64,000 nucleotides of DNA, taken from assembly GCA_904063045.1 (NCBI GenBank), contig CAJFCJ010000012.1, positions 1,550,001 to 1,614,000 of the forward strand, in the 5' to 3' direction. This stretch comes from Dimorphilus gyrociliatus. Taxonomy: Eukaryota; Animalia; Annelida. The notes under the pieces are model-generated. The model ran no database searches and had not been told where the DNA came from. It saw only the letters and a list, made by a program, of their open reading frames with translations. The stretch's first letter is position 1; every line of letters starts with the position of its first letter. The position numbers were made by a program, and so were the translations under genes. Below, piece after piece: positions 17,701 to 59,819 of the stretch.

Positions 17701-20700
17701 AATTTCTCTTTGCCACGCTACTCCGTTTTGGGTATATTTTTGAGGAGAGGAGATACTCCGTCTTTTGTACAGTACGATGAAATCTTTCGTGTTTACGGGA
17801 TATTTACTGATAGAGCTAAGAGATCTATTAGTGTGAGTAGAGGCAGTACACCCATTTAGAGCGATTATCTTAACAGCCATCCCCCCTTGAATAATTAATA
17901 AAATTGCATTTAATTTTTTAATAGAATAAAGAAGTAATGAAAGATACTGGAGACGATCGATTCTACACATTTTTACATAGCGGTCTTTGGTACATGATGA
18001 TTTATAATGATGGGAAAGCGGACGTTGATTTTTCATTCGAAGGGAAAGTTTATAGTACGTATTAGTCAGATTACCCCCCGTTAATCATACTAGGTTGTAT
18101 ATATTATCTTTGCGGATATAGGATTCTCTTATACAATATATTATATATTTATGTTATGCTATTTTTTCTATTGTTTAACCGTCTGTAGGGATGAAAGGTG
18201 GGAGGAACTGTCCGGGAAATTGTAACGGAAGGGGAAAGTGCTACGAGAATGGAGATTGCGCTTGTTATAATGGTAGGTAAACCGTTTATGCCATATCATT
18301 TATACACAAAACTCTTAACTTAATATAAATAAATATGTTATTAGGTTGGAGAGGTGTCGATTGTTCGGTAGAGCCCTGTCCAATACTATGTAGCAATCGG
18401 GGAGTTTACATAAGAGGAAGATGCGAATGCAAAGAAGGCTACAAAGGAAACGAGTGTGAATATTCCATAAATCAATGCGAAGTACCTAACTGCAATGGCT
18501 ATGGGAAGTGTCAGGGTGGCAAATGCGTTTGTCATCCGGGCAGGACCGGAAAACATTGCGAGCTCGGTAGGTATTATTTGATAAATATTGGGAATTAGAT
18601 ATGTCACAAATCTTAATTTTTCTTTTCTTGGCTAAAATCCCATCTTTATTGCTTTTAAATCAACTTAGATTCTCTATTACTTTTTTCCTTAATAATGGGA
18701 TAACAGGGACTTGCAGCGATCCGAATTGTTCAGGGAACGGCGTTTGCGTCAATTCAACTTGTTACTGCAACGCCGGATTTTCAGGCGATAAATGCGAGTA
18801 CGAGGGTAACGTTTGCCCGCAAGCTTACTGCAAATATCGAGGATATGTAGGCAGTAATCGGCCGCTCTGTACTTGCAATAGCGGTTATTACGGAACGCAA
18901 TGTGAATTTGGTGAGGAGCTAGCAAGAATAAATCAATAAATAAAAAGACTAATAAATACATCTGATTGCTCTATGCATGATGTTAACAAGGAGTTAATAG
19001 TGCCTGGTTTTTTTTTTATATATACAAATGCAGCCTAGGAGTAATATATATATATTTTTTATTAACCAAAACGACCATTTCCAATAACCGCATGGGATCA
19101 GTAAAAAAGTGCTTCAACTACTATATTAATAAGCTTTAATGATGTGTATATGCGTGTACGAAATTTCCTATAGAAAAATTCTATACGCATCCGTGAAATA
19201 TAACCCATCAAGGTGTATAAATATATACATATACATATATGTTTATATATATAAATGTGTATGTGTGTGTGTCTGTATACTGTATATATCAAGCATACAC
19301 AAACACATATACTGTATATAATCTATAAATAAACCATAGGGTTAATATGCGTATACAGTATATACAGTATATAAATTTATATATATATATATATTTATAC
19401 AAATAAAATATATGCTCGATATTAATCAATTTTGTAGAAGAATCATTATTAAGTTAATACCCTATAATTTTACTGCAGAACAATGCAGCATAACGTGCGG
19501 ACCGCACGCTGAATGCCATGGGAAAGTATGCAAATGCCACGAAGGTTGGTCAGGGACGTTCTGTAATCATAGAACATGCGATGCCAGGTGTGAAAGAGAT
19601 AATCATGGTATTTGCATGAACGGAACATGCGTATGCAATGTAGGCTTTCACGGAACTTTGTGTACATTTGGTAAGTTTTGGTCGGTTGGCAAAGTATTTT
19701 AAAATATTTATTTTACTACTTAGATTGTTACTCTTATTTGCTTTTTATTTGTAATACATTTTACAGATGATTGCCGGCTGAATTGTAACGGACATGGAAA
19801 GTGTGAAAAGAATTCGAATGGTGAAGGATACACTTGCCTCTGCCAAAGGGGCTTTGGTGGTAAATACTGCCATATTGAAGAAGAAACGTCTCATGATAAA
19901 TGCCATGATGGTAAGGATAATGATGGAGATGGATTGACAGATTGCCAAGATCCGGATTGTAGTAGGAGAGAATTAACAGCACCATGCAAGACTTTCAATC
20001 CTAGCCAATATCGACCATTTGATTTGTACTTGTTAAGGCCACAATTCGTTCCGACCTCGTTTTATGAGAGGTTCAAATTTCTTCTTGCTGATGGGAAACT
20101 TCAAAATATTGCCACATGGACGATGCCCCAGAAGAGGATGAGCCTTCTCAAAGGAAGGGTTCTTATGCACAACGATGTACCCGTTTTCGGTATTAATGTC
20201 AGCATTTCCGGCCAGCCTTTCTGGGGATGGACTTTAACAGACAGTGGCAAAAGCAATTACAATGAAGGCGGTGTCTTTCACATGTTAGTAAGCGGAGGAG
20301 GATCGCTAGAAATAAAATTCGAGCATTTCCCTCCGTCTGGTGAAAAACCAGTATTTAAAACAAAAACCGTTCGAGTAATGGTCCCTTGGAATGATGTAGT
20401 TAACATTGGAAACGTTTATATTGAATTAGTCAAAAAGGAGCCAAAGAAAAAGAAAAGTGATTGTACAGTTAGACATGATAGACGCCTGCTGCACCCAGTC
20501 ATTGTCTATTCCTGGATAAATTCGTATAATGGAGGTTGCAAAGAGGGTTGTCTGTTTCCTCTATCAAATACTCATAAACAAGTGATACCTATTCTCGATA
20601 CTCCGTTATCGTTAGTATATGTATCCTCAAACGCTAACAATTTTGAATCAAAGTTAACCGTAAAGGTTACAGATTCTTACGTTCCGGAAGACTTACAGGA

Positions 20701-23700
20701 AATCCGTCTTATTTTAGATGTTGAAGATTGGAGAGAGCATGGTGTTATTGAAGCACTTCCTCATCAAACTTTTACATTCTATTTGAAGCGCCAGCAAACT
20801 GCTTTAATGATTCAATATAGTTATGGAAATGTTTTAGCAAAGATTTCAATAGGATATATCTATCGATCTTGTACTCAACCACAATGGCATCATTTAACAT
20901 CAAAAATAACTACTGCTTCTGCTCTGACATCAAAAATTTACAAGTGGAACTTGAACATCCATCACTTTTATAGCATTGCAAACAATATACTATTTAAAGG
21001 CGATGGTACACTTATCGATTTCACTGAGAGACCTCGTATTTTAGTTGATATATTTAAGGGACGAAAATGCAAAAGAAAGAAGAAAGCTTGCCGTTTGCGT
21101 TCTCCTAGATCGTTAGCCAGTGACGGAAACGGAAATGTTTACGTATCGGACGAACGTTTTATATGGAAATTTGATGACAAGGACGGATATGAATTACATA
21201 TGGATTTTATTAGATTTAATCCATCCTATCTCCACTATATCGCCGTTGATCCAACGACGAACTACTTAATCGTATCAGATCCTAGATCCAGAGCCGTTGT
21301 TAAGCAAGAAACTCCCGACCCGAAAGAGAATGGTTTCAATATGAATAAGATAGCTGGGGGCGGTGGAAAATGCATACCCGGTCAACCGGACGAATGCGGT
21401 GAAGGGGGATACTCGGGTCGTTCCAGTTTGCAACATCCGAAAGGCGTGGCTGTGAATAAGCACGGTGAAGTCTATATTGCTGACGGAGCCGTTGTAAGAA
21501 AGATCGATAAGAATCGTAATATTCATACGGTTGTCGGTACAATTGGATTACCAACAAAATTAAAGAAATTTCCATGCAATGGTACCATACCAGCGAGAGA
21601 AGTTACCCTTTGGGATCCATCGTCGATAGTTATATCGCCTGTTGACGACTCATTACACATCTTAGATGGTAATGTTGTTTATAGATTATCTGAAGATGGA
21701 TATCTATCGATAATAGCTGGTAGACCACATCACTGTCCGCCCATAACTAAACGAGAACAGTATATTGATATTGAATACACTGAACCGTATCCAGCTTTCG
21801 ACGCTATTCTATATGAACCGCGTGATATTGCTTTTGATTATAATGGTCAATTATACATATTGGAATCAGATGGCAAAAAAATAAATCGTGTACGAATAGT
21901 AACGTCGGATGGTTTCATCAAGTTATTTGCTGGTAGAGTTTCAGAATGCGACTGCTCAAAAGAACGTTGCAATTGCAATGAGCACTTGGGAGTTTCCGCT
22001 CTAGATGCCTTACTCAATTCGCCGTCTAGTATTACTGTAACGCCGGATAATACCTTATATATTTCCGATACGGGAAATGGAAAGATACTTAAAGTCGTCA
22101 GCCAAGTGCCTAAATTAGAAGAGAATAAATTCAATTTCAAATCGGTTGATTTCTATAAGGCTAAGAAAATCTACCGTATAATGGATAGTGAAACTAAAGA
22201 AATGTACGTCTTCAAGGATAATGGTCATCACTTATTAACAATTGATTTGCTGACTGGAGAAGTGAAGTACAAATTTAAAATCGATTATCGAGGAGATCTT
22301 AGACAGGTCATTTCTAATGGAACAGATGATTCAAAGTTCAATGTAACTGTAGATCGTAAATTGTATCAAAATAGGGGAGACGAATGCCTACTCGTTAATA
22401 ATCAATGTTATAAATTGGGTAAAGATGGTTCTAAGCAACTGAAAAAGTTCACCTATCCTAACGGTCAAGCCTATCAATTTGAATTTAACCTAGAATATCA
22501 GCTATTATCAAAGGTCGAACCACATGGTGAGCTGACATTTTTCGAATATGATCAAAATAATCACTTGAAAAGTGTGGTTGGACCTACTGGCGACGTTATT
22601 GAACTTAAACAAGATGATTTGAGTGATCTTTCAACGTATGACCTATACGTAACTGGTATGAATAGTATTAAATGGAGAATAAACGACGGCTCAATTACAT
22701 ATTCGCTCCAAGACTCCACGGCTAAGAATATTATTCGCAGAGTTAATGATGAAACCTATGTGGTAATTCACGCTAATAGACTCGTATCAGTAGTAGAAAT
22801 GACGCCTCGTTATCTCTCAACCACAGAACAAACCATTCAAGTAAGCTGATTATCCATTATTATTCATTTTGATGTGTCTTATATTGACTATCATTTTCAG
22901 GAAAGACGTAAGCTGATCATTCCGAAAGAAGTAGGGAAATTAGAGTTGGATTTTACAAAAGTTCTACTCAGATATATCGATCTAGATAATAGAGAAAGAT
23001 CGAGTAGTGGAAATACAAATAATTTTGGATCTTATTGGAATTTCAATTTGAACTCTACGACCGGATCGGATGCTCCAATTCCGCCGTATAGATATTTTGG
23101 TACTTCTTTGAAATTAAATAATATGGAATTTCTTCGTATTCTGTTTAAAACGGATAAGAATAGACCTCAAGAAATTTATTATAAATCATTAGGAACTAAA
23201 AGGCCTTCCGAAAAGCTATTTACGATAGAAAAGCTCCCAGGAGGTTTACCAGTCAAATTTATACCTAGATTTAGTCCAAAGAGCTTAAATCATATAGTAA
23301 TTCATTACACTGCGAGCGGAAAACTCTCATCTTGGGCTGAGAAAAAGAACACGTTTGAAGTACGAAACATATCATTCGTCTATGATGACCAAGATCGCCT
23401 TACGAAAACATTAATAAATCGTAGGGCTGAGTATGATTATCGTTACCATAAAGGGCACAAAGTTCCAAGAACTATTGAACGTTCATCCGGTAGACAATTT
23501 CACGTTAAAATGGATGATAAAGGATTCATTAAGGAGATAATATCTCAATCATTAGCTCATAATAGATTTCATAAAGTTTTATCACCAAATCTACACCGTC
23601 TTGTCTATCAAAGACATCGTAACGAACGTGTTTTGTTTGATTTTGACGCCTTCGGCCGTTGCAAGTATATTCGACTGCCTTCGAACGAAAGGAGGATATC

Positions 23701-25981
23701 CTACAATTTCCTAACAGATGGCCGCCTTCTCGAGGAAAAGTTTGACATGACATCAGTCAAGTACATGTATCAAAGTCATTCGAACGAATTAGCTTCAATC
23801 CATTTAGAAAATGGTATAGAAGATCAAGGGAAAGTATCTTTGAATTATTTTGGGGATATTGTAATTAACTTGCACAGAATTGAATTTCAAAACGAGGAAG
23901 TTAAATCAATTGAGTTTAACTATAAGAGGGATGATTTACTTCGTGTAACAGAGATAAGTGGCCATATTGGAGAAAGAATCTTTACTACACTTACGTATAA
24001 ATACAATGACTATGGAGACGTTGAATATATAAATAGTAACTATTTTAGAAAGACTTCTGATTCAGTAGACGTTGTAGGTGTCAGCCGTATACTCATTGAA
24101 AAGAAACACGATCTCTTTAATAAAATGGAAGAAGTAACTGTTATGTTCGGAAAGCGTAAAGTGAGTAACATCATTGTTAAGAGAGATGCGAGAGGACGTC
24201 CAATAAGACAGGAAAAATATAGACACTCGTCTGGCGGTGGCATGCAATTCGTACAAGAATATGCCTACAAGGATGAAGCGATCAAGGTTTATAAGGAGCA
24301 GTCGAGAGACATTTTATCTTATAACTTCAATTTTGAGGAGAACGGCGGTTTTGTCATGAAAAATGACTTGAAAGGTAATCAACAAGAGTTTCGCATGAAT
24401 GTCACTGGAGAAGTTCTGTCTATGAAAGTTAAAGGAACCGAAACGACATTCCACTACGACATTGACGGATACTGCATCTATTCTAAATCGAAAAAACAGA
24501 AAATTGTATTTGAATGGTCAGCTAAAGCCCAAATCCTAAGGATTACTGATCATAGCTTTGACATTCGATACGTTTACGACGGTCTCGGCCGACTAACCGC
24601 TAGAATAAAGGAAAGTAGAGTAATTCAATTCTTTTACTCCGACCTCACTAACCCGGGACGAGTAACGCATATTTATGATAACAAGGTTGGAAAATCCGTT
24701 TTCATCTACGATCGGAATGGGCGATTAACCGTCATAATACAACGTAATAGAACGTACGCTGTCATCCTGGACGGGTTCGATAACGTTGCAGCAATCTACG
24801 ACGCCGAAACAGGCGAGGAAGTAGTCAGAGCAAATTACGACCCTCTAGGCAGGATAAAAATTGATGGTCAATTTGAGTTCTACTTGGGTTACCGTGGAGG
24901 AATACATGAAATAGAGAATAACTATGTCGTGTTATTAAACGGTCGTATATTGCATACTATCCACGGAATGTACTTGGCTCCCGATTACCAAGCCTTTATT
25001 AAACAGTCTCACAAAGTATTGACTCACCCGGAAATGCTATACCTCTATCTTCCGATATTCCCAGACTTGATAGACCTACAACCGCCTACAGATCCGAAAT
25101 GGTGGCTAAATACCTTCGCTTTTAACGTTGATAATTTTATCCATAAAGTCGGCGCCGACGGCTCGTTAAACTCTATATTGGATTATCGTACATCGCTAAT
25201 ACCTACGGTGAAGCATACTTTGTCGGCATCCACAACTGTGGAAGCTTCGTATCGGGAACGTGAAAGGATTATTTTAAACGAGTTATCTCCTTTCCTAAAA
25301 CCGAATTTGTATTATAAAGATCTGCTATTTACTCCCCTTACTTCCAAACACGGCTATCCATTAGGGGAAGGAATGCTATTGGCGGTTCGACCTAATTTGG
25401 ACGTTCGTCTAAAGTCTTGTAAGCCCTTGATTTCAAAAGAAAATAAAAAGCTGATGGAGAAAATGACAAGAGTATTCAATCATACGAAAAAGATTGACGG
25501 TGTCTATACAAAATTCGGAAAGGACTATCATTATTTTGCCTATCAAGCATCCGACAAAGTCGGATCAATGATAAGCCAAGGTTTAAAACGAACTGAGGAT
25601 TTAGGTAATGTCTCTTTGAAGATAGAGGATGTTGTGGAGGCCAATTACAACGTTAGAAAATCCCATACGGATCTAACTGTAATAAGATTGGATAACCATC
25701 AAACTACCTTCAAAGTCAGAGATGGCATGAGCTATTTAGAAATAAAGGACAAGATTAAAATGGAATACGAGGAATACGCGATCAGAAGAGCTTGGAAAAT
25801 GGAAAAAGAAAGGGCAGAATTAGGTATGCGAACCCGCGCTAAATGGACTAATAAACAGATGAAAGAGTTACGGGAAGGCGAGAATGTGCAATCAGCTAAG
25901 ATAGCTTGGAGGTGGGCTGTTGATCCTCAGGCCTATGATGACCCCAACAATATTATATTTGATTTTGTCGAAGAAAGTTGA
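8782..25981 (+). CDS. TENM: Teneurin (Ten-m/Ten-a family type II transmembrane receptor), 15 coding exons, ~2768 aa
   Basis: Hand-assembled phase-compatible GT-AG exons: 8782-8947, 13330-13632, 14438-14711, 15475-15600, 16164-16279, 16496-16558, 17465-17601, 17698-17832, 17925-18054, 18189-18272, 18345-18566, 18707-18910, 19479-19670, 19767-22840, 22901-25981 (8307 nt). Proline-rich ICD (EPPPPAP), CSWK plus TM helix, RAKR furin site, 8 EGF repeats with odd-cysteine EGF2 and EGF5, NHL region, YD/RHS repeats, Tox-GHH-like C-terminus. The exon 2/3 junction is ambiguous (see findings). Confidence 0.96.
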
Positions 25982-27948: not shown

Positions 27949-29816
27949 TCATTCGTACAAGTTTGCCAAGGCGGGAAAATTATAGAAATCCCTTGATTTT
28001 TTATAAGGTACATAATGGCTTGTACCCTGGGGTCTATGATAAGGGCTCTGATGCGTTGTACTTGACCAGTTTTGTGGATTAAAATCATTGTGGGGGAACA
28101 ACGGTGAAGGCGTAGATGCCGTTGAAGTTTGGCAAGGAATTTGAAGGTCGTGATGTAAACCGTTAACCGGTTGTTCTTCTTTTGGTGAAAAAACTCCAGC
28201 AGCCGATAGGACGGAACTCCTCTGAGCTACTACACTTCTTTCGTTCCTTCTAAATTTAGCTCTTCTATTTTGAAACCATACCTGAACTCTTGCCTCACTC
28301 AGGTCGACTCTCTTTGCTAACTCTTCCCTGACGAAAGCGTCCGGGTAGTGGGTCCTCTCAAAGACTCTCTCTAGAGCGGCCAATTGAGTACTATTAAACG
28401 TCGTACGATTCCTTCGGGATTTCTTTTTCGCCGCATCATCGTTAGCTCGTCGACAATCTGTTTGAAATAAAATAGTAGTTGAGGGAGAGGAGATTAAGAA
28501 GACAAAATAATTAAATGCAAGAGGAGGAGAGTAACCTACAACCACAATTACAATAGCAACCACAAAAATGAATTAAGAAAAGAAGGCATATCGAACTGCT
28601 TTATAAACCGGGTGATAAATGCTCACTATCGTTTCTCTTCTAACGTGAAGCATATGTTATGAGATGCGGTGAAAGGGAAGTATTACGCAGCTTCTATACT
28701 CCCATACTGTTCTAGGCTTACCAACATAAAATTTTATATTTTTAAGACAGGTAAAAATCTTAACGAAACTTGACAGTTGGTAAAGCGACTTTTTAAGTTG
28801 CCGAACCATGTCGGGGCGCGAGCCTGCTATTCGCAGCTGTTTTATGGTCTCGACGTTTGCCTTTTTCTTTTTTATCAGTTTGTCGAGGCTTTATCGCGAT
28901 GGCGAGATGCGAGAATTTCGCCTTTTTAATGTTAGTATCCGATTTCGGATCGACCGGAACAGATGCGTCAGAGAAAATGAGGGCGACGCACATAAGGCTA
29001 TAAAAAATGTAAGAGAATCCTTCGTTCAGATGTTCATTAGTTCACTACTTCTGTCTATCTCTTTTACGTATCTTTAAAAAATCTCTTTGGTTCTCTTTCT
29101 CTCATCGCTCTAGGTCTCCTTTCTTATCTCCTACGACTTTTTTTCTATCGGTTTCTTTTGAAGAACTCCACCAGACGTTGGACTCTGTTGTACTGGTAAT
29201 CTAGCCACATGCTCTCCATTTATTATAGCTGTTGACTGAAATGACTGTCCAAAGCACACCTTTTGGCCCTTATAATTTAGATTAGGAGAATATTTTCACA
29301 CTTTTTAATAGGTTATTCAATTAACGATAGTATATTAAATATGAATAATAAAATGCTTGAATATTTTCAAACAGAGAAAAAAGTGACGACTGCACCAACA
29401 CATTATCGAAATAATATTGTAAACTGTTGTCAAAAATCCAAACGAATACATGAATATGTATGATAAATTTCATCACCTTGGGAATTAAAGTACGAGATAC
29501 ATAGATACTTTACGAGCTATTAAGAAAGTCTAATGTGTAGAACGGAGGGAACAGGGGAGGAAAAGGAAGAAAAAAATAAAACACATGCAAAACACATTTT
29601 GCTAGGTACTCAGTCAAGCTTATAGTAAATGAGCCAGTTCTAATAAGAAACAGGTTTGCGAATGACGCATAGCGTTGATAAGTACCCGGCGTGTGCGCCA
29701 CGGTTTTTCCCGATGTTTGTACAGAATATATGATAATCACATACCTCTCTTATAAATGTTTACTTTTCTCACCTGTTTCATTTTAATTTCATTTTAATAT
29801 TACTCTATTCAGTTGC

Positions 29817-36738: not shown

Positions 36739-39700
36739 CTATGTTTTTCTGTCTAGGATATTTAAAGGAAGTAAACAATTTTTAATTGTAGCCTTGAACT
36801 TTTCCTCCTCCAATTTTCTTAGTCCGAATAAACAAGGTTGACTTGTTAAAAAGTTATCAATTAAATTACAAATATGATATTTATTATCTAAAATCATCTT
36901 TGCCGAACCCTAAAATAGATTTAAATGGAATTATGTTATATAATTTTTAATAAATCCAAGTTCCAGAGGTGAAAGGAAATGAATGTACCTTTATTGTCTG
37001 CGCAGCAATATCTAGCGAGACATCTCTCGGTAGATCAACTAAAACTCCACCATCAGTTAGAGCTTGTAAAGCCGTAGCCGCCTAATTAATAAAATATGTG
37101 TATATAGACTGTAGACTGTATACTGCTTAAATCATTAATTTTCCCCTTACAATAACTAAACCATTCTGAGTTATAGAATATACTGCTTCCAGCTCTTCTT
37201 CCTTTATAATTTCTACTAGACCAATAGTTTTGAATAGTCTAGAAACAAAATCCAAATCTTCCAGAAGCACATCTCTACCAGCAACGCAAATAGCTATACC
37301 AGTTTTAACCAGTATTGTTAAATTAATAAGAATTTTAAGGATAATCCCTTGATTATCTAATATCTAGTAGGAAAAACAAATTAGATTATAATAAAGATTT
37401 GTCATGGGAGAATACATAATTATTTTTACATTTTCTATCTCATCTATACAAATATTGCATTGAATTGAATTCAGGATGATAAGTAACATCTTTCCTCTCA
37501 ATTTTCTACTTAATCTCTTAAGCACGCTTAAAACATCTTTTGAACTTTTAACAGATTGATATGTTATTAAAATGACGTCACTATTCTCGACTATATCATC
37601 GTAATTATCCGAGAAGGTATCATTACTCGAGTTGACGAAAGAATTCGTAACGTCAAAAGAATCTTTGATATATAGCACACAAAAAAATACGATTAAAGAC
37701 TCTTCCTTCCAATCAGATTAATTAGATTATTACCTTCGTTAAATATCGATATCAATATATTATTGATTGATTCATTTCCAATAAATCCAAGCTTGACTTT
37801 ATCCCAATTATTTTTATTCCTCCATGATTTATCATTGACTTTCGGTACGTTTTCATCTTGAATACTCTCAATTGTATTTGAACATTCCCAATCTTTTACT
37901 AGGTCAATTTGTCCAGGAGAAGGCGAGTTCAATATTCCAAAGGGTATTGATCGTCTCGAATCGTACTTTTCGACCTCCTCCTTCTTTATTGGAATTCCTG
38001 GTCCAATATGTGTTGACGACGCTAATATATCTATTTCTCTTCTACTTGCATTACCGTTTGTTACCATACTATCACTATAGCTAAGTGTGTGTGGTTCTGT
38101 TGAGGGGAGGAAGGATGTTAAAGTTGGTGTAGAGGTAGGATATTCGACTTTTCCCTTGTACGTACAAGTTCTCTTTCTCTTTTTCCTTAAGATATTTGTT
38201 TGACATTTAAATAAATCGGCAGAGGAAATTGATGAAAACTTATTTGGTCTTCCTTTCAGCTTAACTTCTTGCAAATCGAAGGAGATTGTTCTATAGGAAG
38301 ATGCGGATGATTTATCAATGTGTGTACTCTTAGGTGCTCTTTTTCCTTGACCTATTTGAGTGGACTTTGGAGATTGTTTCTCAAAAGTTGTTTCCATTTT
38401 CATCTTCGGCTTTGTCTTCTTTGTCATGGATTTTACTTTTTCACCACTAAATTTATTAAACGTCTGGTTCTTTTCTCCACTTTGTTTTATTGTTCTATTA
38501 TTTAAAGTAGATTCATCTCTAGATCCTGTACCTAATTCGCAAACAACAGACCCAGATACTCTTTTCGATTCACTAGAACTGATACAATCAATCTCGGAAT
38601 GTTGAACTTTTCCGGTAATTTTTATCTCTTTCTTCTTCTTCTTCATGGAAATCTTCGTCTTCGAAGTGCTCGAGGAGTTGTTTATTTTCCTTGGTTTATT
38701 GCGATTTAAAATAGATGTTATAGACTCTAGGCCTGAGCAGCTTGATACGTTACTCAATTTTTCTTTATTTAAATGATCAATTTTGAATTTAGGATACTTC
38801 GAACAAACAGGCCACCATTTTGAATCCTTTTTTAACCTATTAATATGTCTCTTACAGACGTTTTTATCATTGTTTTTGTCTTCTAGTTTTTTATCTATTA
38901 ATTTAATAGATTTGTATTTTTTCAGTTCTTTATTACACCAATTTATTAGTTCTTGATTAAGTTGAGATCTATCACTTAAAGTTTTAACTAAGTGTTTATC
39001 TACTGTCGATTTATTACCAGAATTGAGTAGTTTAATTTCTGACTTAACGTTCAACTTTTGCGGTTTTAACTCCCTGAAAAGAATACGTTGTTGGTAATTT
39101 ATCATTGAAAAACAAATAGTACGTTTACCTGTTTCCATTGATCTTATACTGTTGAACGATATCATCGGTCAGAATACAATTATATTCTCTTTTTAATGGC
39201 GTATTTGTATTCGTAGCATCTGGAATTGAGTACGATTTATTTACTATAGTATTATCCCTCTCTCTCTTTTCAGAGTTCTTTCCATTTAAAGAAGGATTTT
39301 CGAGCGATGGAGAAGCCTCTATTGAAAATCTTTCACTTTGTTCGCTATTCATACATAAAAGTAAAAAATCGACGTATTTTGCGTTCTTTTCCGTAAAGAT
39401 ATTATTTAATTCATTTTTCTCTGAATATTTTGCCAATTTATCATCTTTTTCGAATTCGTCTAACTTAAGTAATGAATCTATTGAATCGTTACGTTCTTGT
39501 TTAAGAGTATTGGTAAACAGTTCCCTATTCTCCTCCTTTATCAACTTTTGATGTAACAATTCTAAGGATGGATTTTCTTTATCACTTAAAATGGCACCCG
39601 AATTTATTTTGCAATATAGAAGATCACCTTGAGTTTTATCCCAATTTCCGTTATTATTCAATTTTAATGAATCTTTTAATAAATATTCATTTTCATATAT

Positions 39701-40823
39701 TTCTCTTTCTTCTTTCGTAAGTGCACTTTGTCTTAGGAATTTTTCGAATTCTTTATTTCCAATGTAATACTCATTTGCGTAATAATCTTTTAGCATTGTC
39801 TCCATGGATGATTTTCTAGTTTGTCTATTTTTATAAGATAACGGCTCATCCTCTATTTCTAGTTCAGAAGAGCATCTATGCTGTTCATAAATTCTGTGAT
39901 TCTTAATAATATTTAAAACAGAAATTTCTCTTTTTATATTTTTTGCCTTTTCTATTTCTTCCCTTTGGGCTTCTTCTTTTTCTTCTTCTTCTTCCTCTTC
40001 CTCCTCCTCTTCTCCTTGTCTTTTCCCTACTTTCGCTTTAGTTTCTTCGTTTTCCTGTCTTTGTTGTCCTCCAACTTCATCCTCTTCTTTTTTTCCATCT
40101 ATTTCTTGCTGTTCTTCTTCTGCTTCTATTTTATTATCATCTCTTCCTTGTTCTTCTTCCTTAACCTCATCCTCTTCTTCGTTATTTTCATCTCTTTCTT
40201 GTCCCTCATCTTCATCACCTTTTACTTTAGCTTCGTCTCTTTCTTGTTTCTCTTCTTTTTCCCCTTCTTCTGAGGAGAGAATTGATGCAGGAAGCATTGT
40301 TGTTTTAAAGGACTCTGATGAAAAAGTCAAACTTTGTATTGTACTTTCATCATCTGAATTTTTTCAGTAAAGCAAATTGAGAAAAAAAGAGAAAAGTATG
40401 AAAAATATCTCTTTCATGAATAATTGTTCCCGTACCATCATAAAACTTATCATTTAATGATTCTTGAAGAGTATTTGAAGGGGATTTTGTCAAATTTTCT
40501 ATTTTTTTTTCTTTTGATAAAGTAAAACTTAATTATGATAAAATTAATAATAAAACTTCAATCAATTATTTACTGAAGAAATCATAGGGACAAACTTCTT
40601 TATTCAATGAACTGGAATATGATAATTTTGTCATCAAAACGTCTCTTTTCGTTGGTTGGGTGTTTAAATCAAATTCTGGATAAGATTTTAAATAGAATTA
40701 AAAATTAATTAATAAAATAATTATAAATATGGAACCAATTTCAGATTTTCTCCAGATTTCTACTGATTGATTGATAGGGTTATCTTCAATTGATTGCTGA
40801 GATTCTGCTGAACTAAGAGCCAT
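36739..40823 (-). CDS. ~1179-aa protein: long Glu-rich and Lys/Ser-rich low-complexity N-terminus fused to a degenerate pyrroline-5-carboxylate reductase (PYCR/ProC) domain
   Basis: Phase-compatible exons 40823-40736, 40675-40574, 40510-40436, 40353-39129, 39073-37734, 37662-37430, 37363-37151, 37081-36989, 36909-36739 (3540 nt). C-terminal [40 protein letters not shown] is a clear P5CR dimerisation-domain match, and KLGFIG is the first Rossmann strand. The start codon choice is uncertain. Confidence 0.8.
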
Positions 40824-41464
40824 AGTAGATTGACAAATATCTAAATGACAAGAAAATGAAACGCTTTCTGACACTTTCTAACTTTGAATACGTAAAAAAA
40901 AAGAAACTTACGTAAAGAATGTAAATCGGTTGTAGAAGAGAAAGTTAACGATAAATTTTTGCTACTTTGAATTAAAGAAAATAACGTTTTTCTCAGCCAA
41001 TTTGAGTTGCTATCATTCAATTTTCGATTAATTAACGTATTTATAGAGTCAATGTTAAAATTTACATTGAATTTGTAGAATTAAAATCATAAAGGGTATT
41101 ATAAGGGAAAAGTAGATTTATTAAGATTATCTATACAATTGATTTTTAAATGATTATTCATTTAAGTCTTGTTTTAAAATAGGAATTTATTAAATTTTTT
41201 ACGATAGAGAATGATGTTTTGAATTTTTCAAATTTTAATATTTATTAATATTAAAATTTAACGGTCATTCTCTTTTAATGATTATACATCATTTCATTTA
41301 TATTTAATTGATTCATATATTTAATTAATATATGATTATGTTTAATATCTGTATTTATTTATTCGTTTTCTAAATTCTCCATAAGAAAATAAGAGAAAAA
41401 CTGCAGACTTTACACGATTTCTATCTCATTGATTAATTTCATTTAGAATTCTATAATTGAATGA

Positions 41465-42566
41465 TTAAGCTAAAGCTAATTCGTGCGCTGCAGCATATCT
41501 TCCATATGCACAATGGAATAATTGCCTTTCGATATCTCCAAGCAAACTAGAGGCACCCAATCTAAACATTTCATTATTCACCCATTCATCACCCAACTCT
41601 TCTTTCATTAATGATAGCCAAGTAAGAGAATCCTTAGCTGTTCTTATACCGCCAGCCGGTTTAAAGCCAACTTTTATTCCAGTTTTTTGGTAGTAATGTC
41701 TTATCGCTCTTACCATAACCAAGGCAACTGGTAAAATAGCATTTACTGATTCTTTTCCAGTAGACGTTTTAATAAAATCAGCGCCAGCCATCATACAAGT
41801 CATTGACGCTTTATAAATGTTTGTCATACTTCCTAATTCACCAGTCGCCAGAATTGTTTTCATGTGAGCATTTCCGCATGCTATTTTCATTTCTTTAACC
41901 TCTTCGAAAACCTATCGATTTTGTTTAAAGTTTTAATATAAGTGATAGATTTCAGAATGAGTAAATGTGTTTATGCTTACCTTTTCCCATTCGCCATTCA
42001 ATGCATAAGTTCTATTGATTACAATATCAATTTCTGTTGCACCATCAGCAACTGCTCTTCTAATTTCTTCTAATCTACAACTCAATGGTGTTTGACCAGC
42101 TGGAAAGCCAGTAGCTACAGATGCAATTTTAATACTAGTGTCGGCACTGCAAAGTAATACAAATTATTTGTCATGTTAGACTTTATTCATTTGCAAATAA
42201 TAAAGAATAAGGAGAAGAAATGTACTTTAAGCTTTTCAAGATTTCCTTACATTCGGCAACTCTGTTTGGATAGACACAAACTGCGCCTACTTTAATCCCT
42301 TTAGTTTGCATACCAAAATAACGAACAATATCATCCCTTACAGGTCTGACGGCCTTATGACACAGTCTTTGAACATTAGAGCGAGTGTCATCTCCTGAGA
42401 GAGTAGTTAAATCGATACAAGTAACAGCTCTAAAAAGCCAGGCGGCTTGATAGCTCTTTTTAACCGATCGTCTCTTTCCAAGTTCTCCTGCTCGTTTTTT
42501 AATGGCAGGCAAATTAAAATTTTCCTCTGTCAACCACGATTCATTGAAATTAACGCCGTTGTTCAT
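41465..42566 (-). CDS. DERA: Deoxyribose-phosphate aldolase
   Basis: Exons 42566-42226, 42146-41981, 41911-41465. Motifs IDLTTLSGDDT, AVCVYP, VATGFPAGQ, KTILATGEL, ADFIKTSTGKE, GFKPAGGI. Confidence 0.97.
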
Positions 42567-56628: not shown

Positions 56629-58855
56629 CTATTTTTTACCCCATCCCCATAAACTTTTAATCATACCACCAATACCACCTCCAGCAGCAGCCGATTTCTT
56701 CTCTCCAATCTGGTCGTCCAAATTTGGAAACTTCAGTAGGGATAAGGCCAAATCGAAAAACAATGGTTTGCATGCAACTGGCTCAAAATCGGGAGGTAAA
56801 GATGTCAAGTTGACTTGATCTCCAGTTAAGCTTCTATCTTCACCAAAGAGGTCGAGCCGTTCGTCCAAAGGTATTTTTAAGTCTTTTACTGATAATTTTT
56901 TCGTTCTCTTATTTAAATCATGTATATCTGATACTTTTGAAACCCTGCACACACTTTTTCCTGCATCCGCTTCATTTATTAAATTTAATATGTCAGACTT
57001 GAAAGCATTATCTGAGTTCGTATTCTCTAATTGCTCAAGAGCTTTAGTTCCTCTTACTTCAACCAAATCGTATAATGCCATAGTTTCGCCCCATTTACTG
57101 ACATTCTGGTAAGCTCTAGCGGCATAGTAGCATCTATAAGTTTTAAATACGGCAATCTTTACTTTACATTCTCTCTTCAATTCCAGGTCTTCTTCTAAAC
57201 CTGGAAGAGTCGTTATATCGTTTGCATTTTGAACAATTGTATCATATAATCTTGCTAGTTCGTGTGGTTTCGTCTTCTTTTGATCTGAATTACTTGGTAC
57301 TTCTAAGTTTTGTTTTGCCTGATTGATCATTAATAGATAACGATCTATATTATGATTCAATCTCTTGTACATTATATAAGAATATAAATGTACGCTTTGA
57401 GGTACACGTCCCTCAATTTGTTGTCCTCTGATGATACTACGGAAAGTTGGATCATCTTTAGATTCTTCTTTCAAAGCAGCAGCAGAGTCAATTAGGTCCT
57501 TCAGTAGTGATTCATAAATAGAAAGCTTTGCTTCTGCATTTTCCGATTCAGACAAAGAACGCTCGAGTTCTTGGACATTCAGTAAATGAACTCGTATAGT
57601 TTCAGACTTGATAGGTATAATTTTACCTAAAAGTAATATTTAAAGTTAAAATTGATTCGAAACATTTTATTATTTTAAAAGTACCTCTCCAAGAAACTTC
57701 CGATAGAGTTGCAACTTGCTTTGCTTTAGTTTTTTCTATGAGCTCATCTAGTTGACTGGATAAAGCCCCACCTTGGGTCATTCTTAGCTTCCTTAGTTCT
57801 TCCATGGCACTCTTGTCGCCGATATTGTATTCGCAATATCTTAGAATTGGTGTTATTTCATCGCACCTTATTTTATATAATTCTTTAGAGTCATCAGTTA
57901 TAGCATCAAATAATCGATTATAAATTGTTTGAGCTTTTTGAAACCCAGTGACAGCTTCTTGCCATTTTTCTAATTCAAATTCATAGCTTGCCCTCATCCA
58001 TGATTCGTAAGCTTCTGCTTCAAGCTTAGATCTAGCATCGCAGACTTTAGCAGAACATAGTGCATTTAAAAGTGAAGCGTGTTGTACAGCTTTTCTTAAA
58101 CGGCTTAGTTTATGATACTTTTTACGGGGTTCAGTATTCGATTCGGACTTGAGAGCAACAGCATATGCCCAAGCTCTTTCGGCTTCAAAGAGAGGAATTA
58201 ACAAAAATCTGAAACGAAGATGTAAATTATATTTTTTTGTTTAGGAATAATAAATTTTAAAAAGATTTGATTGGTAACTTTTTTTAGTGAGTACTGTTGA
58301 TTCAATACCCTCGCCGATATGATTGTCCCTATTATCGCCTACAGGCAATTTAAAAAAAAATAGACAAAATTAAAAAGGAACTTACTTAACATCTTTGAGG
58401 TGATCCTCGGTAACCTTTTTAGGTTGTACCTTCCTCATATTTCCTTGTGGAAAATGCAACGATTTACGAACGCGTCGTAAACGTCTGGCACAATATTGCC
58501 TGAGTAAAATATTGAGAGAAATATAAGTATTTAAAACGCAGCAAGATTTTTATAAGATTTCAATTAATTCTTACCTGTATCTATGATAATCATCATGTCG
58601 CAAACCATGTTGTTGCTGTGCGTCCTTTACAATTCTTAGAGCTATTTAAAACAGGTACAATTAAGATATATGCCATGTGGCAACTTACTTAAATTAATTT
58701 AAAATCTAAGTTATCAGCTGGATACATCTTACAGAAAAAAAAACAAAATTTGCCTGCTAACCTTCTAAAGTTAAAGAATCTTTTAGCTCAGGTTTTGTTT
58801 GATCTTGAGTTGTTTTTTGTTCACTTTTCGAATTCTCAATATCTACGTCTGCCAT
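56629..58855 (-). CDS. SRP68: Signal recognition particle subunit SRP68
   Basis: Exons 58855-58762, 58641-58575, 58499-58386, 58208-57685, 57626-56629. Motifs QQQHGLRHDDYHRYR, EAERAWAYA, LRYCEYNIGD, CKPLFFDLA, IKSLWGWGKK. Confidence 0.97.
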
Positions 58856-59135: not shown

Positions 59136-59819
59136 ATGGCTTCGAAACAAGAAAAAGCTTTTCGTGATGATATGACCATTGAATTTTGGGATGGATACTA
59201 CAAAGATGGAAGTCATCCCTGGCATGAGAAAAACGTAAATAAGGGCTTAAAAGCAAATATAGAAACTTTCATAAATGGAAGAGATCATATAGTAGCATTT
59301 TTTCCGCTTTGTGGAAAGGCTGTTGACATGAAATGGATCTATGATCTAGGTCACACAGTTATTGGAGTTGAGGGTTCTATACAAGCAATTGAGGAATTCT
59401 TCAAAGAGAGTAACCTGGAATATGATGTAGACGGAAACAAGTATTCAACCCCTGATAAAAGATTGACGATATTTGCTATGAATATCTTTGATTATAATGT
59501 TGAACTGATGGGTGAAGTTAGCGCTGTTTGGGATCGTGGTGCTTTTGTTGCAATCAATTTTTCAGAAAGAGCAAAATATTCAGAGTTAATGAAGAGTATA
59601 TGCACTAAAGATTGTCGCTATATACTTGATGTTTATGAATACGACAGAAGCGTATACGGCGGACCACCCCTTTGCACCACTAAAGAAGATATCGATGAGC
59701 ATTTCTCCAGTTGGTGTACTTCTGAGAGAATTTTTGAATCTGATGAAATTACAGACCATTGGAGAGAAGTAGGATTTCAATCCTTTATGAGATACGATTA
59801 TCTCCTGACGCCTAAATAA
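59136..59819 (+). CDS. TPMT: Thiopurine S-methyltransferase-like SAM-dependent methyltransferase, 227 aa
   Basis: Single ORF with FFPLCGKAVDMKW..DLGHTVIGVE, VWDRGAFVAIN, GGPP. Confidence 0.92.
   Translation: MASKQEKAFRDDMTIEFWDGYYKDGSHPWHEKNVNKGLKANIETFINGRDHIVAFFPLCGKAVDMKWIYDLGHTVIGVEGSIQAIEEFFKESNLEYDVDGNKYSTPDKRLTIFAMNIFDYNVELMGEVSAVWDRGAFVAINFSERAKYSELMKSICTKDCRYILDVYEYDRSVYGGPPLCTTKEDIDEHFSSWCTSERIFESDEITDHWREVGFQSFMRYDYLLTPK

Follow-up and report, generated by a model that had tools for sequence, protein, structure and literature searches.

The window analysed here, 64,000 nucleotides of AT-rich eukaryotic DNA from the annelid Dimorphilus gyrociliatus (contig CAJFCJ010000012.1, positions 1,550,001 to 1,614,000), carries on its minus strand, at 40823..36739, a real, expressed, single gene for a protein of 1179 residues. 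About 920 N-terminal residues are followed by a domain related to pyrroline-5-carboxylate (P5C) reductase (P5CR), in which the cofactor and substrate motifs of the enzyme are replaced. We propose, with a probability of roughly 0.6, that this domain is a dead derivative of the enzyme, which would be kept by selection as a self-association module on a motif-bearing arm.

One gene and one transcript

The coding sequence is made of nine exons of compatible phases, all introns being GT-AG, for a total of 3540 nt, that is, 1179 codons and the stop. This model was compared with contigs of one public RNA run (X1), which show joints and cannot give expression level or isoform ratios. The contigs omit exactly the predicted introns (CT..AC on the + strand), and since the segments skipped have GT..AG ends, run X1 represents spliced RNA. 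One contig of 2257 nt covers the last 193 nt of exon 4, then exons 5 to 9, and extends to 15 nt beyond the stop; the joints E1-E2, E2-E3 and E3-E4 come from other X1 contigs. A single mRNA therefore carries both the long N-terminal region and the P5CR-like part. All nine exon translations also occur in order in a public protein, DgyrCDS8911 (NCBI CAD5120337.1, UniProt A0A7I8VXS0, hereafter P0049, 1179 aa). An earlier reading, made from the letters alone (the sequence-only reading), had predicted nine phase-compatible exons encoding about 1179 aa as one transcript and one protein, and the exon borders, the RNA joints and the public protein all agree with it. It had also held that the P5CR-like domain has no initiation of its own; KLGFIG (aa 924), its first strand, is indeed inside exon 5, and the closest upstream Met is aa 833, 91 residues before.

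40912..41062, minus: upstream non-coding exon (5' untranslated region); RNA joint 40912->40840 skips 71 nt (GT..AG); 5' limit uncertain
40736..40840, minus: exon 1 (coding part 40823-40736, start codon 40823-40821)
40574..40675, minus: exon 2; RNA joints, and a tblastn match in the contig of a relative (L001, 5643-5720, E = 7e-4)
40436..40510, minus: exon 3, 75 nt; acceptor 40510 set by an RNA joint
39129..40353, minus: exon 4, aa 89-496; contains the acidic tract and the first two conserved islands (aa 294-348, 396-427)
37734..39073, minus: exon 5, aa 497-943; Lys/Ser-rich region with conserved islands, then the opening strand of the P5CR-like domain with its degenerate Gly loop
37430..37662, minus: exon 6, aa 944-1021; belongs to the Rossmann-like half and lacks VKP and AAG
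37151..37363, minus: exon 7, aa 1022-1092; KILINLT for RVMPNTP, TQNGLVI for SGSGPAY
37082..37150, minus: intron 7; unusually conserved relative to L001, retained in isoform DgyrCDS8913
36989..37081, minus: exon 8, aa 1093-1123; 87% amino acid identity to the relative, falls within the P5CR dimerisation domain
36739..36909, minus: exon 9, aa 1124-1179 and TAG stop; remainder of the dimerisation domain, TSQ-PC for SPGGTT with one residue deleted

The frame entering the start ATG from the upstream exon carries no ATG itself. A minor in-frame RNA joint (40574->40314) leaves out 38 codons, namely exon 3 together with 39 nt (13 codons) from the start of exon 4. Another X1 joint, 38912->41042, is non-canonical (TG..TT, depth 360, 21 nt on one side); together with loose contig ends at 38892 and at 41062, the latter at the uncertain 5' limit of the upstream non-coding exon, it probably corresponds to chimeric contigs or a repeat.

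The gene model is not new, three unnamed isoforms being already present in the public annotation. They form the 90% cluster of the protein: DgyrCDS8911; DgyrCDS8912 (946 aa), in which exon 6 is skipped and a stop follows NEDIR; and DgyrCDS8913 (1099 aa), in which intron 7 is retained and a stop follows VRGKLMI. No paper on the protein was found, and it is unmentioned in the supplements of the genome paper (PMC7854359).

Homology to P5C reductase

Whole-domain searches used the public protein P0049; the exons were also searched singly. Residues 915-1179 matched human PYCR2 with an E value of 3.6e-19, the best match in the PDB, followed by Medicago P5CR (4.7e-17), Plasmodium P5CR (4.8e-17) and PYCR1 (about 4e-16). 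The alignment with the Plasmodium enzyme (2rcy) pairs query residues 7-255 (aa 921-1170) with residues 3-250 of the chain, that is, the whole enzyme. Judged by these matches, residues 915-1179 are homologous to P5C reductase, far beyond chance.

The two halves of the domain differ in how well they are recognised. The sequence-only reading had named two Pfam families to look for, and of these P5CR_dimer was recovered in P0049 (45.6 bits for a cut-off of 25, profile positions 1-95 of 105), whereas F420_oxidored, the Rossmann half, gave no match at E <= 1. Taken singly, exons 8 and 9 gave sub-threshold P5CR_dimer scores of 18.6 and 13.3 bits, at consecutive profile positions. The Rossmann-like half alone matched 2rcy in a phmmer search of the PDB (E = 3.6e-5 over 166 residues) and the proC model TIGR00112 (E = 1.3e-8, 34.8 bits, below the equivalog cut-off of 196.75). 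When this half was compared by HMMER with 1.84 billion representatives, 45 proteins were found at E <= 0.001: the protein itself, exon 7 of a relative, a Macrostomum PYCR model, one chance match, and about 40 P5CR-sized proteins. Among the latter, all 33 that were scanned fit proC models, and all the named ones are pyrroline-5-carboxylate reductases. The chance match, a protein of 1832 aa with CARDB and FG-GAP domains, was rejected as low-complexity similarity. AlphaFold2 (AF2) prediction of the Rossmann-like half, run without an alignment, had a mean predicted local distance difference test score (pLDDT) of 48; its best fold matches were P5CRs, which lends weak support only.

These comparisons trace the C-terminal 260 residues back to a pyrroline-5-carboxylate reductase of eukaryote type. 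An origin from the animal's own PYCR would be simplest, given that the closest enzyme of solved structure comes from an animal and that spliceosomal introns interrupt the gene.

The Macrostomum lignano PYCR model (P0004, UniRef100_A0A1I8HBL3, 676 aa) combines three intact N-terminal domains, arranged in tandem, with a single dimer domain, and is probably a fused model of tandem duplicates.

Loss of cofactor and substrate motifs

The domain was aligned with 34 canonical P5CRs, a position being called conserved when at least 70% of them agree. It keeps 19 of the 52 positions so defined. The replacements fall on the following motifs.

37777..37794, minus: KLGFIG, aa 924-929, beta-1 of the Rossmann-like half, with NESIN next, where GxGxxG is expected
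GxGxxG to GNESIN (929): second Gly, 97% conserved, now Glu
VKP: K to Q, and P (100%) to S
AAG: G (97%) to N; NSIQC (1008) lies opposite SCAAG
RxMPNTP to KILINLT (1031): R (100%) to K, and P (97%) to I
SGSGPAY to TQNGLVI (1086): P (100%) to L
SPGGTT to TSQ-PC (TSQPC, 1145): one Gly deleted, and T (97%) to C

PYCR1 has its NAD(P)H site in the N-terminal Rossmann domain and holds the substrate with Ser233 and Thr238 of the last loop (PMC7560826). The equivalent of Thr238 is a Cys here, and the substrate loop reads T-S-Q-(deletion)-P-C. The kept positions (among them G926, I928, G929, D972, N1035, G1043, F1065, G1069, E1076, G1089, T1121, G1124 and L1139) look structural. Every motif replacement listed in the sequence-only reading was borne out by the alignment to solved P5C reductases. 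A loss of catalysis is thus well supported by the residues replaced, from which we infer that activity is absent.

Relatives, synteny and selection

Two single-exon open reading frames (ORFs) in Logan assemblies, P0001 (768 aa) and P0002 (783 aa), are the counterparts of exons 4 and 5. Exon 5, used in a word search, led to one relative, and the ORF of the relative led in turn to DgyrCDS8913. The source run of P0002 appears in a coral-microbiome study. Both ORFs end with KLKLGFIGNQ[AS][IL]N at the splice donor, so that in all three species the first domain strand shares an exon with the N-terminal region. A contig of a relative, L001 (12.9 kb), contains exons 6-9, intact and with the same borders. 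The order DeoC aldolase - this gene - MFS transporter is common to the window and L001.

41465-41890, minus: DeoC/DERA aldolase exon (L001 4235-4660)
35379-35876, minus: MFS transporter exon (L001 10544-11029)

Amino acid identity to L001 was 41% for exon 6, 54% for exon 7, 87% for exon 8 and 56% for exon 9. Summed over exons 6-9, Nei-Gojobori counts gave proportions of nonsynonymous and synonymous differences (pN and pS) of 0.25 and 0.68, corresponding to rates of dN = 0.30 and dS of about 1.8 (saturated), hence a dN/dS of at most about 0.17. For the aligned parts of exons 4 and 5, dN was 0.55-0.64, and by this measure the domain would evolve about half as fast as the N-terminal arm. With frames and splice sites intact in the relative and dN far below dS, the check proposed earlier for a decaying pseudogene turned out in favour of a maintained gene: on these rates the domain is under purifying selection, not decaying. 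The earlier observation that the dimerisation helices are best preserved also stands, since exons 8 and 9 are the most conserved between species and constitute the only part passing the Pfam threshold.

The motifs of L001 are equally degenerate (GNQAIN, NSLQT, KILIDSS, AHNGLLI and KTLPC), and the Gly loop of the other relative reads GNQSLN. Because the relative has equally degenerate motifs, their loss would be old and the domain would have been retained since; on this comparison, motif loss predates the split of the species compared. No other protein of this architecture, put forward as novel by the sequence-only reading, turned up in protein and metagenome searches outside three dinophilid-like worms. 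As far as these searches go, the gene is so far known only in D. gyrociliatus and two dinophilid-like relatives.

The N-terminal region

The first 920 residues match no Pfam family, and no PWWP domain was found in them. The region comprises an acidic tract and, from aa 236 to 920, a stretch rich in Lys, Ser and Asn (net charge +34). Identity over aa 236-945 among the three species is 27%, and it is concentrated in seven or eight short islands, which include two conserved basic clusters resembling nuclear localisation signals.

39914..40282, minus: acidic tract of aa 113-235, with 37% Glu and a net charge of -33
aa 294-348: island with ..YLLxxSLKLNNxGNWDxTQG..
aa 396-427: island with NIFTxKNxKYVD
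aa 529-608: island with LNQELIxWC.. and WPxCSKYPKFKID
aa 679-755: island with EKNQxFNK..KVKSxTKKTKxKxK..QSPKSxQIGQGK
aa 773-795: island with KFS..KCQTxxL and a basic cluster
38170..38187, minus: RKKRKR basic cluster, aa 793-798; relatives basic too (KRGKKKK, RRGKQKK)
aa 854-893: island with GPGIP[IL]KK[ED] and SIPFGILNS
aa 908-945: island leading into the P5CR-like domain

The acidic tract, with a run of 11 Glu at aa 203, has no counterpart in the ORFs of the two relatives as aligned, these ORFs starting beside the tract; the comparison covers the aligned ORFs and, upstream of them, one weak match to exon 2. The strings singled out in the sequence-only reading (RKKRKR, IKKE and poly-Glu) are all present in P0049, and IKKE, at aa 859, corresponds to a psi-K-x-[ED] site conserved in the relatives. 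The AT-hook suggested for KGRP (aa 770) was rejected: the string is present in the protein, but GRP is not conserved, the relatives reading LKRINKF and LRKRTKF.

A search of 5.8 billion proteins, by words with a length filter and by profile, found no relatives of the N-terminal region beyond the same three proteins, and none were found in JGI metagenome contigs. AF2 prediction of aa 285-943 with the three sequences gave a pLDDT of 33 and a few helices, the best at about aa 534-555. This fits, on weak evidence, a largely disordered arm with short motifs.

The pattern N-x-N-W-D-K occurs twice in the protein, in NNNGNWDKTQG of the first island at aa 320-330 (39589-39621, minus) and, shortly ahead of the P5CR-like domain, at aa 916-921 in NKNNWDKVK (37802-37819, minus). 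The second copy retains only N-W-x-K in the relatives, and the repeat may be due to chance.

Intron 7 and splicing

Intron 7 (37082-37150, minus; L001 8882-8948) shows 81% nucleotide identity to the relative, compared with 39-57% for introns 5, 6 and 8 and 70% for exon 7, synonymous sites being saturated. Two blocks are conserved in it, GTAAGkGGAAAATTAATGATTT and ACACAyATTTTATTAATyAG. It directly precedes the exons of the dimer domain, and it is the same intron that is retained in DgyrCDS8913, whose protein stops short of that domain. Intron 7 may be a splicing control element, and these features hint that an isoform lacking the assembly module is made in a regulated way. A possible stem between the two blocks, of 8 invariant A-U/G-U pairs (-3.8 kcal/mol), showed no covariation and was not retained as evidence of structure.

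Proposed role and alternatives

The C-terminal helices of P5CRs make an obligate intertwined dimer and are able to form decamers. In PYCR1, the C-terminal part is a six-helix dimerisation domain, and the enzyme is a pentamer of dimers (PMC7560826). We propose that the P5CR-like domain would no longer reduce P5C and would act as a self-association module by means of these helices, which would render the long motif-bearing N-terminal arms multivalent. The two annotated isoforms with intron 7 retained or exon 6 skipped would lack this module. A self-association module is the simplest explanation because a domain of the dimerisation type has been kept under selection without its catalytic residues; oligomerisation itself is thus a reasoned proposal. 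Among the features seen, only the conserved basic clusters suggest a nuclear location, and scaffolding in the nucleus or in a condensate would be plausible.

Several points weigh against this proposal. Saturation of dS makes the dN/dS value an upper bound estimate only. The dimerisation domain keeps only 8 of 26 canonically conserved positions, and its last helix is degenerate, so that a canonical decamer is not assured. Structure predictions are weak for both the Rossmann-like half (pLDDT of 48) and the N-terminal part (33), and hence neither fold geometry nor disorder is demonstrated. Finally, the conserved GFIGN[EQ]x[IL]N could be a new ligand site, and not a dead one.

This last point leads to an alternative in which the domain has been repurposed and, through the GFIGN[EQ]x[IL]N and P-C-L-x-G loops, serves another ligand or reaction, as a sensor or an enzyme on a long arm. 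The replaced loops are themselves conserved, KLGFIGNxxxN in three species, and PCLxG as well, and the domain changes at about half the rate of the N-terminal arm. However, nearly all canonical cofactor-contact positions changed together, including the glycines of the tight pyrophosphate turn, and the equivalent of Ser233 differs between two species (T versus K). We regard such repurposing as unlikely.

A more elaborate form of the self-association proposal would have the dead core as a dimer or decamer displaying 2-10 arms in a nuclear scaffold, with intron 7 and exon-6 skipping forming a splicing switch towards arm-only isoforms that do not assemble. If this scheme were true, oligomeric state would be set by alternative splicing. 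Taken as a whole, it is speculative and has rather little chance of being right.

The domain might also be a dead subunit that co-assembles with a presumed active PYCR of the worm, controlling proline synthesis or changing its location, either in a hetero-oligomer or in a dominant-negative manner. The most canonical-like part of the dimer domain, a 29-residue stretch, is identical to Medicago P5CR at 16 of 27 positions and is near human PYCR2; the acidic N-terminus, on the other hand, is unlike a mitochondrial presequence (reading by eye), and we hold this explanation to be improbable.

It is still more doubtful that the gene is a fast-evolving orthologue of NOXRED1. The latter is likewise an animal P5CR-family protein of unknown function, and the literature mentioning it contained no functional study. 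No NOXRED1-type protein was present among the 45 significant matches, although comparison with the NOXRED1 sequence itself was not part of the search; out-of-clade matches at E <= 0.001 are canonical P5C reductases where scanned or named, save the one chance match. The strongest signal of the domain is P5CR_dimer, with which NOXRED1 is not known to be annotated. Two annotated isoforms end before or within the domain, which could speak for the remnant of a decaying pseudogene or for exons wrongly joined in the gene model. Such a reading is largely refuted: spliced RNA joins all exons, the frames are open and the exon borders conserved in two species, dN is far below dS, and in each of the three species the first domain strand shares its exon with the N-terminal region.

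Other genes in the window

Four other genes were noted. The domain set of the first is usual for animal teneurins.

19934-25981, plus: teneurin in two very long open exons, with TTR, FN-plug, NHL, YD-shell and C-terminal Tox-GHH
27949-28563, minus: homeodomain protein
56629-58204, minus: SRP68, two exons
59136-59819, plus: thiopurine S-methyltransferase-like protein

Comparison with known systems and significance

The domain resembles PYCR1/2/3 and ProC (F420_oxidored and P5CR_dimer) in its homologous full enzyme length, its two-part layout and its recognisable dimer helices. It departs from them by the loss of six motifs, by an undetected F420_oxidored and a proC score below the equivalog cut-off, and by the addition of a 920-residue N-terminal extension. 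NOXRED1 is comparable as an animal P5CR-family protein without known function, and none appeared among the significant matches.

NPAC/GLYR1, a longer protein that is partly disordered, ends in an inert dehydrogenase-fold domain, which forms tetramers and acts as a scaffold for partners (PMC13144531). The likeness is one of design only, a dehydrogenase-fold domain being C-terminal to a long arm. NPAC binds NAD(P)H tightly and is without only the catalytic Lys, whereas here the nucleotide loop is gone; and where NPAC combines PWWP, AT-hook and beta-hydroxyacid dehydrogenase, the present protein has a P5CR fold, no PWWP and a KGRP that is not conserved. CtBP likewise uses a dehydrogenase fold for assembly beside a long disordered region (PMC13144531). 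It comes, however, from an unrelated family and still binds NAD(H), the binding being what drives its oligomerisation; the disordered part of CtBP is far shorter and lies at the C-terminus.

D. gyrociliatus is a small marine worm whose genome is known for its compaction; as it is not a genetic model, the practical weight of the finding is limited. Dehydrogenase-fold pseudo-enzymes such as NPAC/GLYR1 and CtBP show that metabolic folds are reused for assembly and regulation. Our literature search found no paper mentioning both 'pseudoenzyme' and pyrroline-5-carboxylate reductase, and P5CR would therefore be a new parent fold for such proteins. The gene would also be a clean case of a lineage-restricted gene, made of a duplicated housekeeping enzyme and a long region without detectable relatives.

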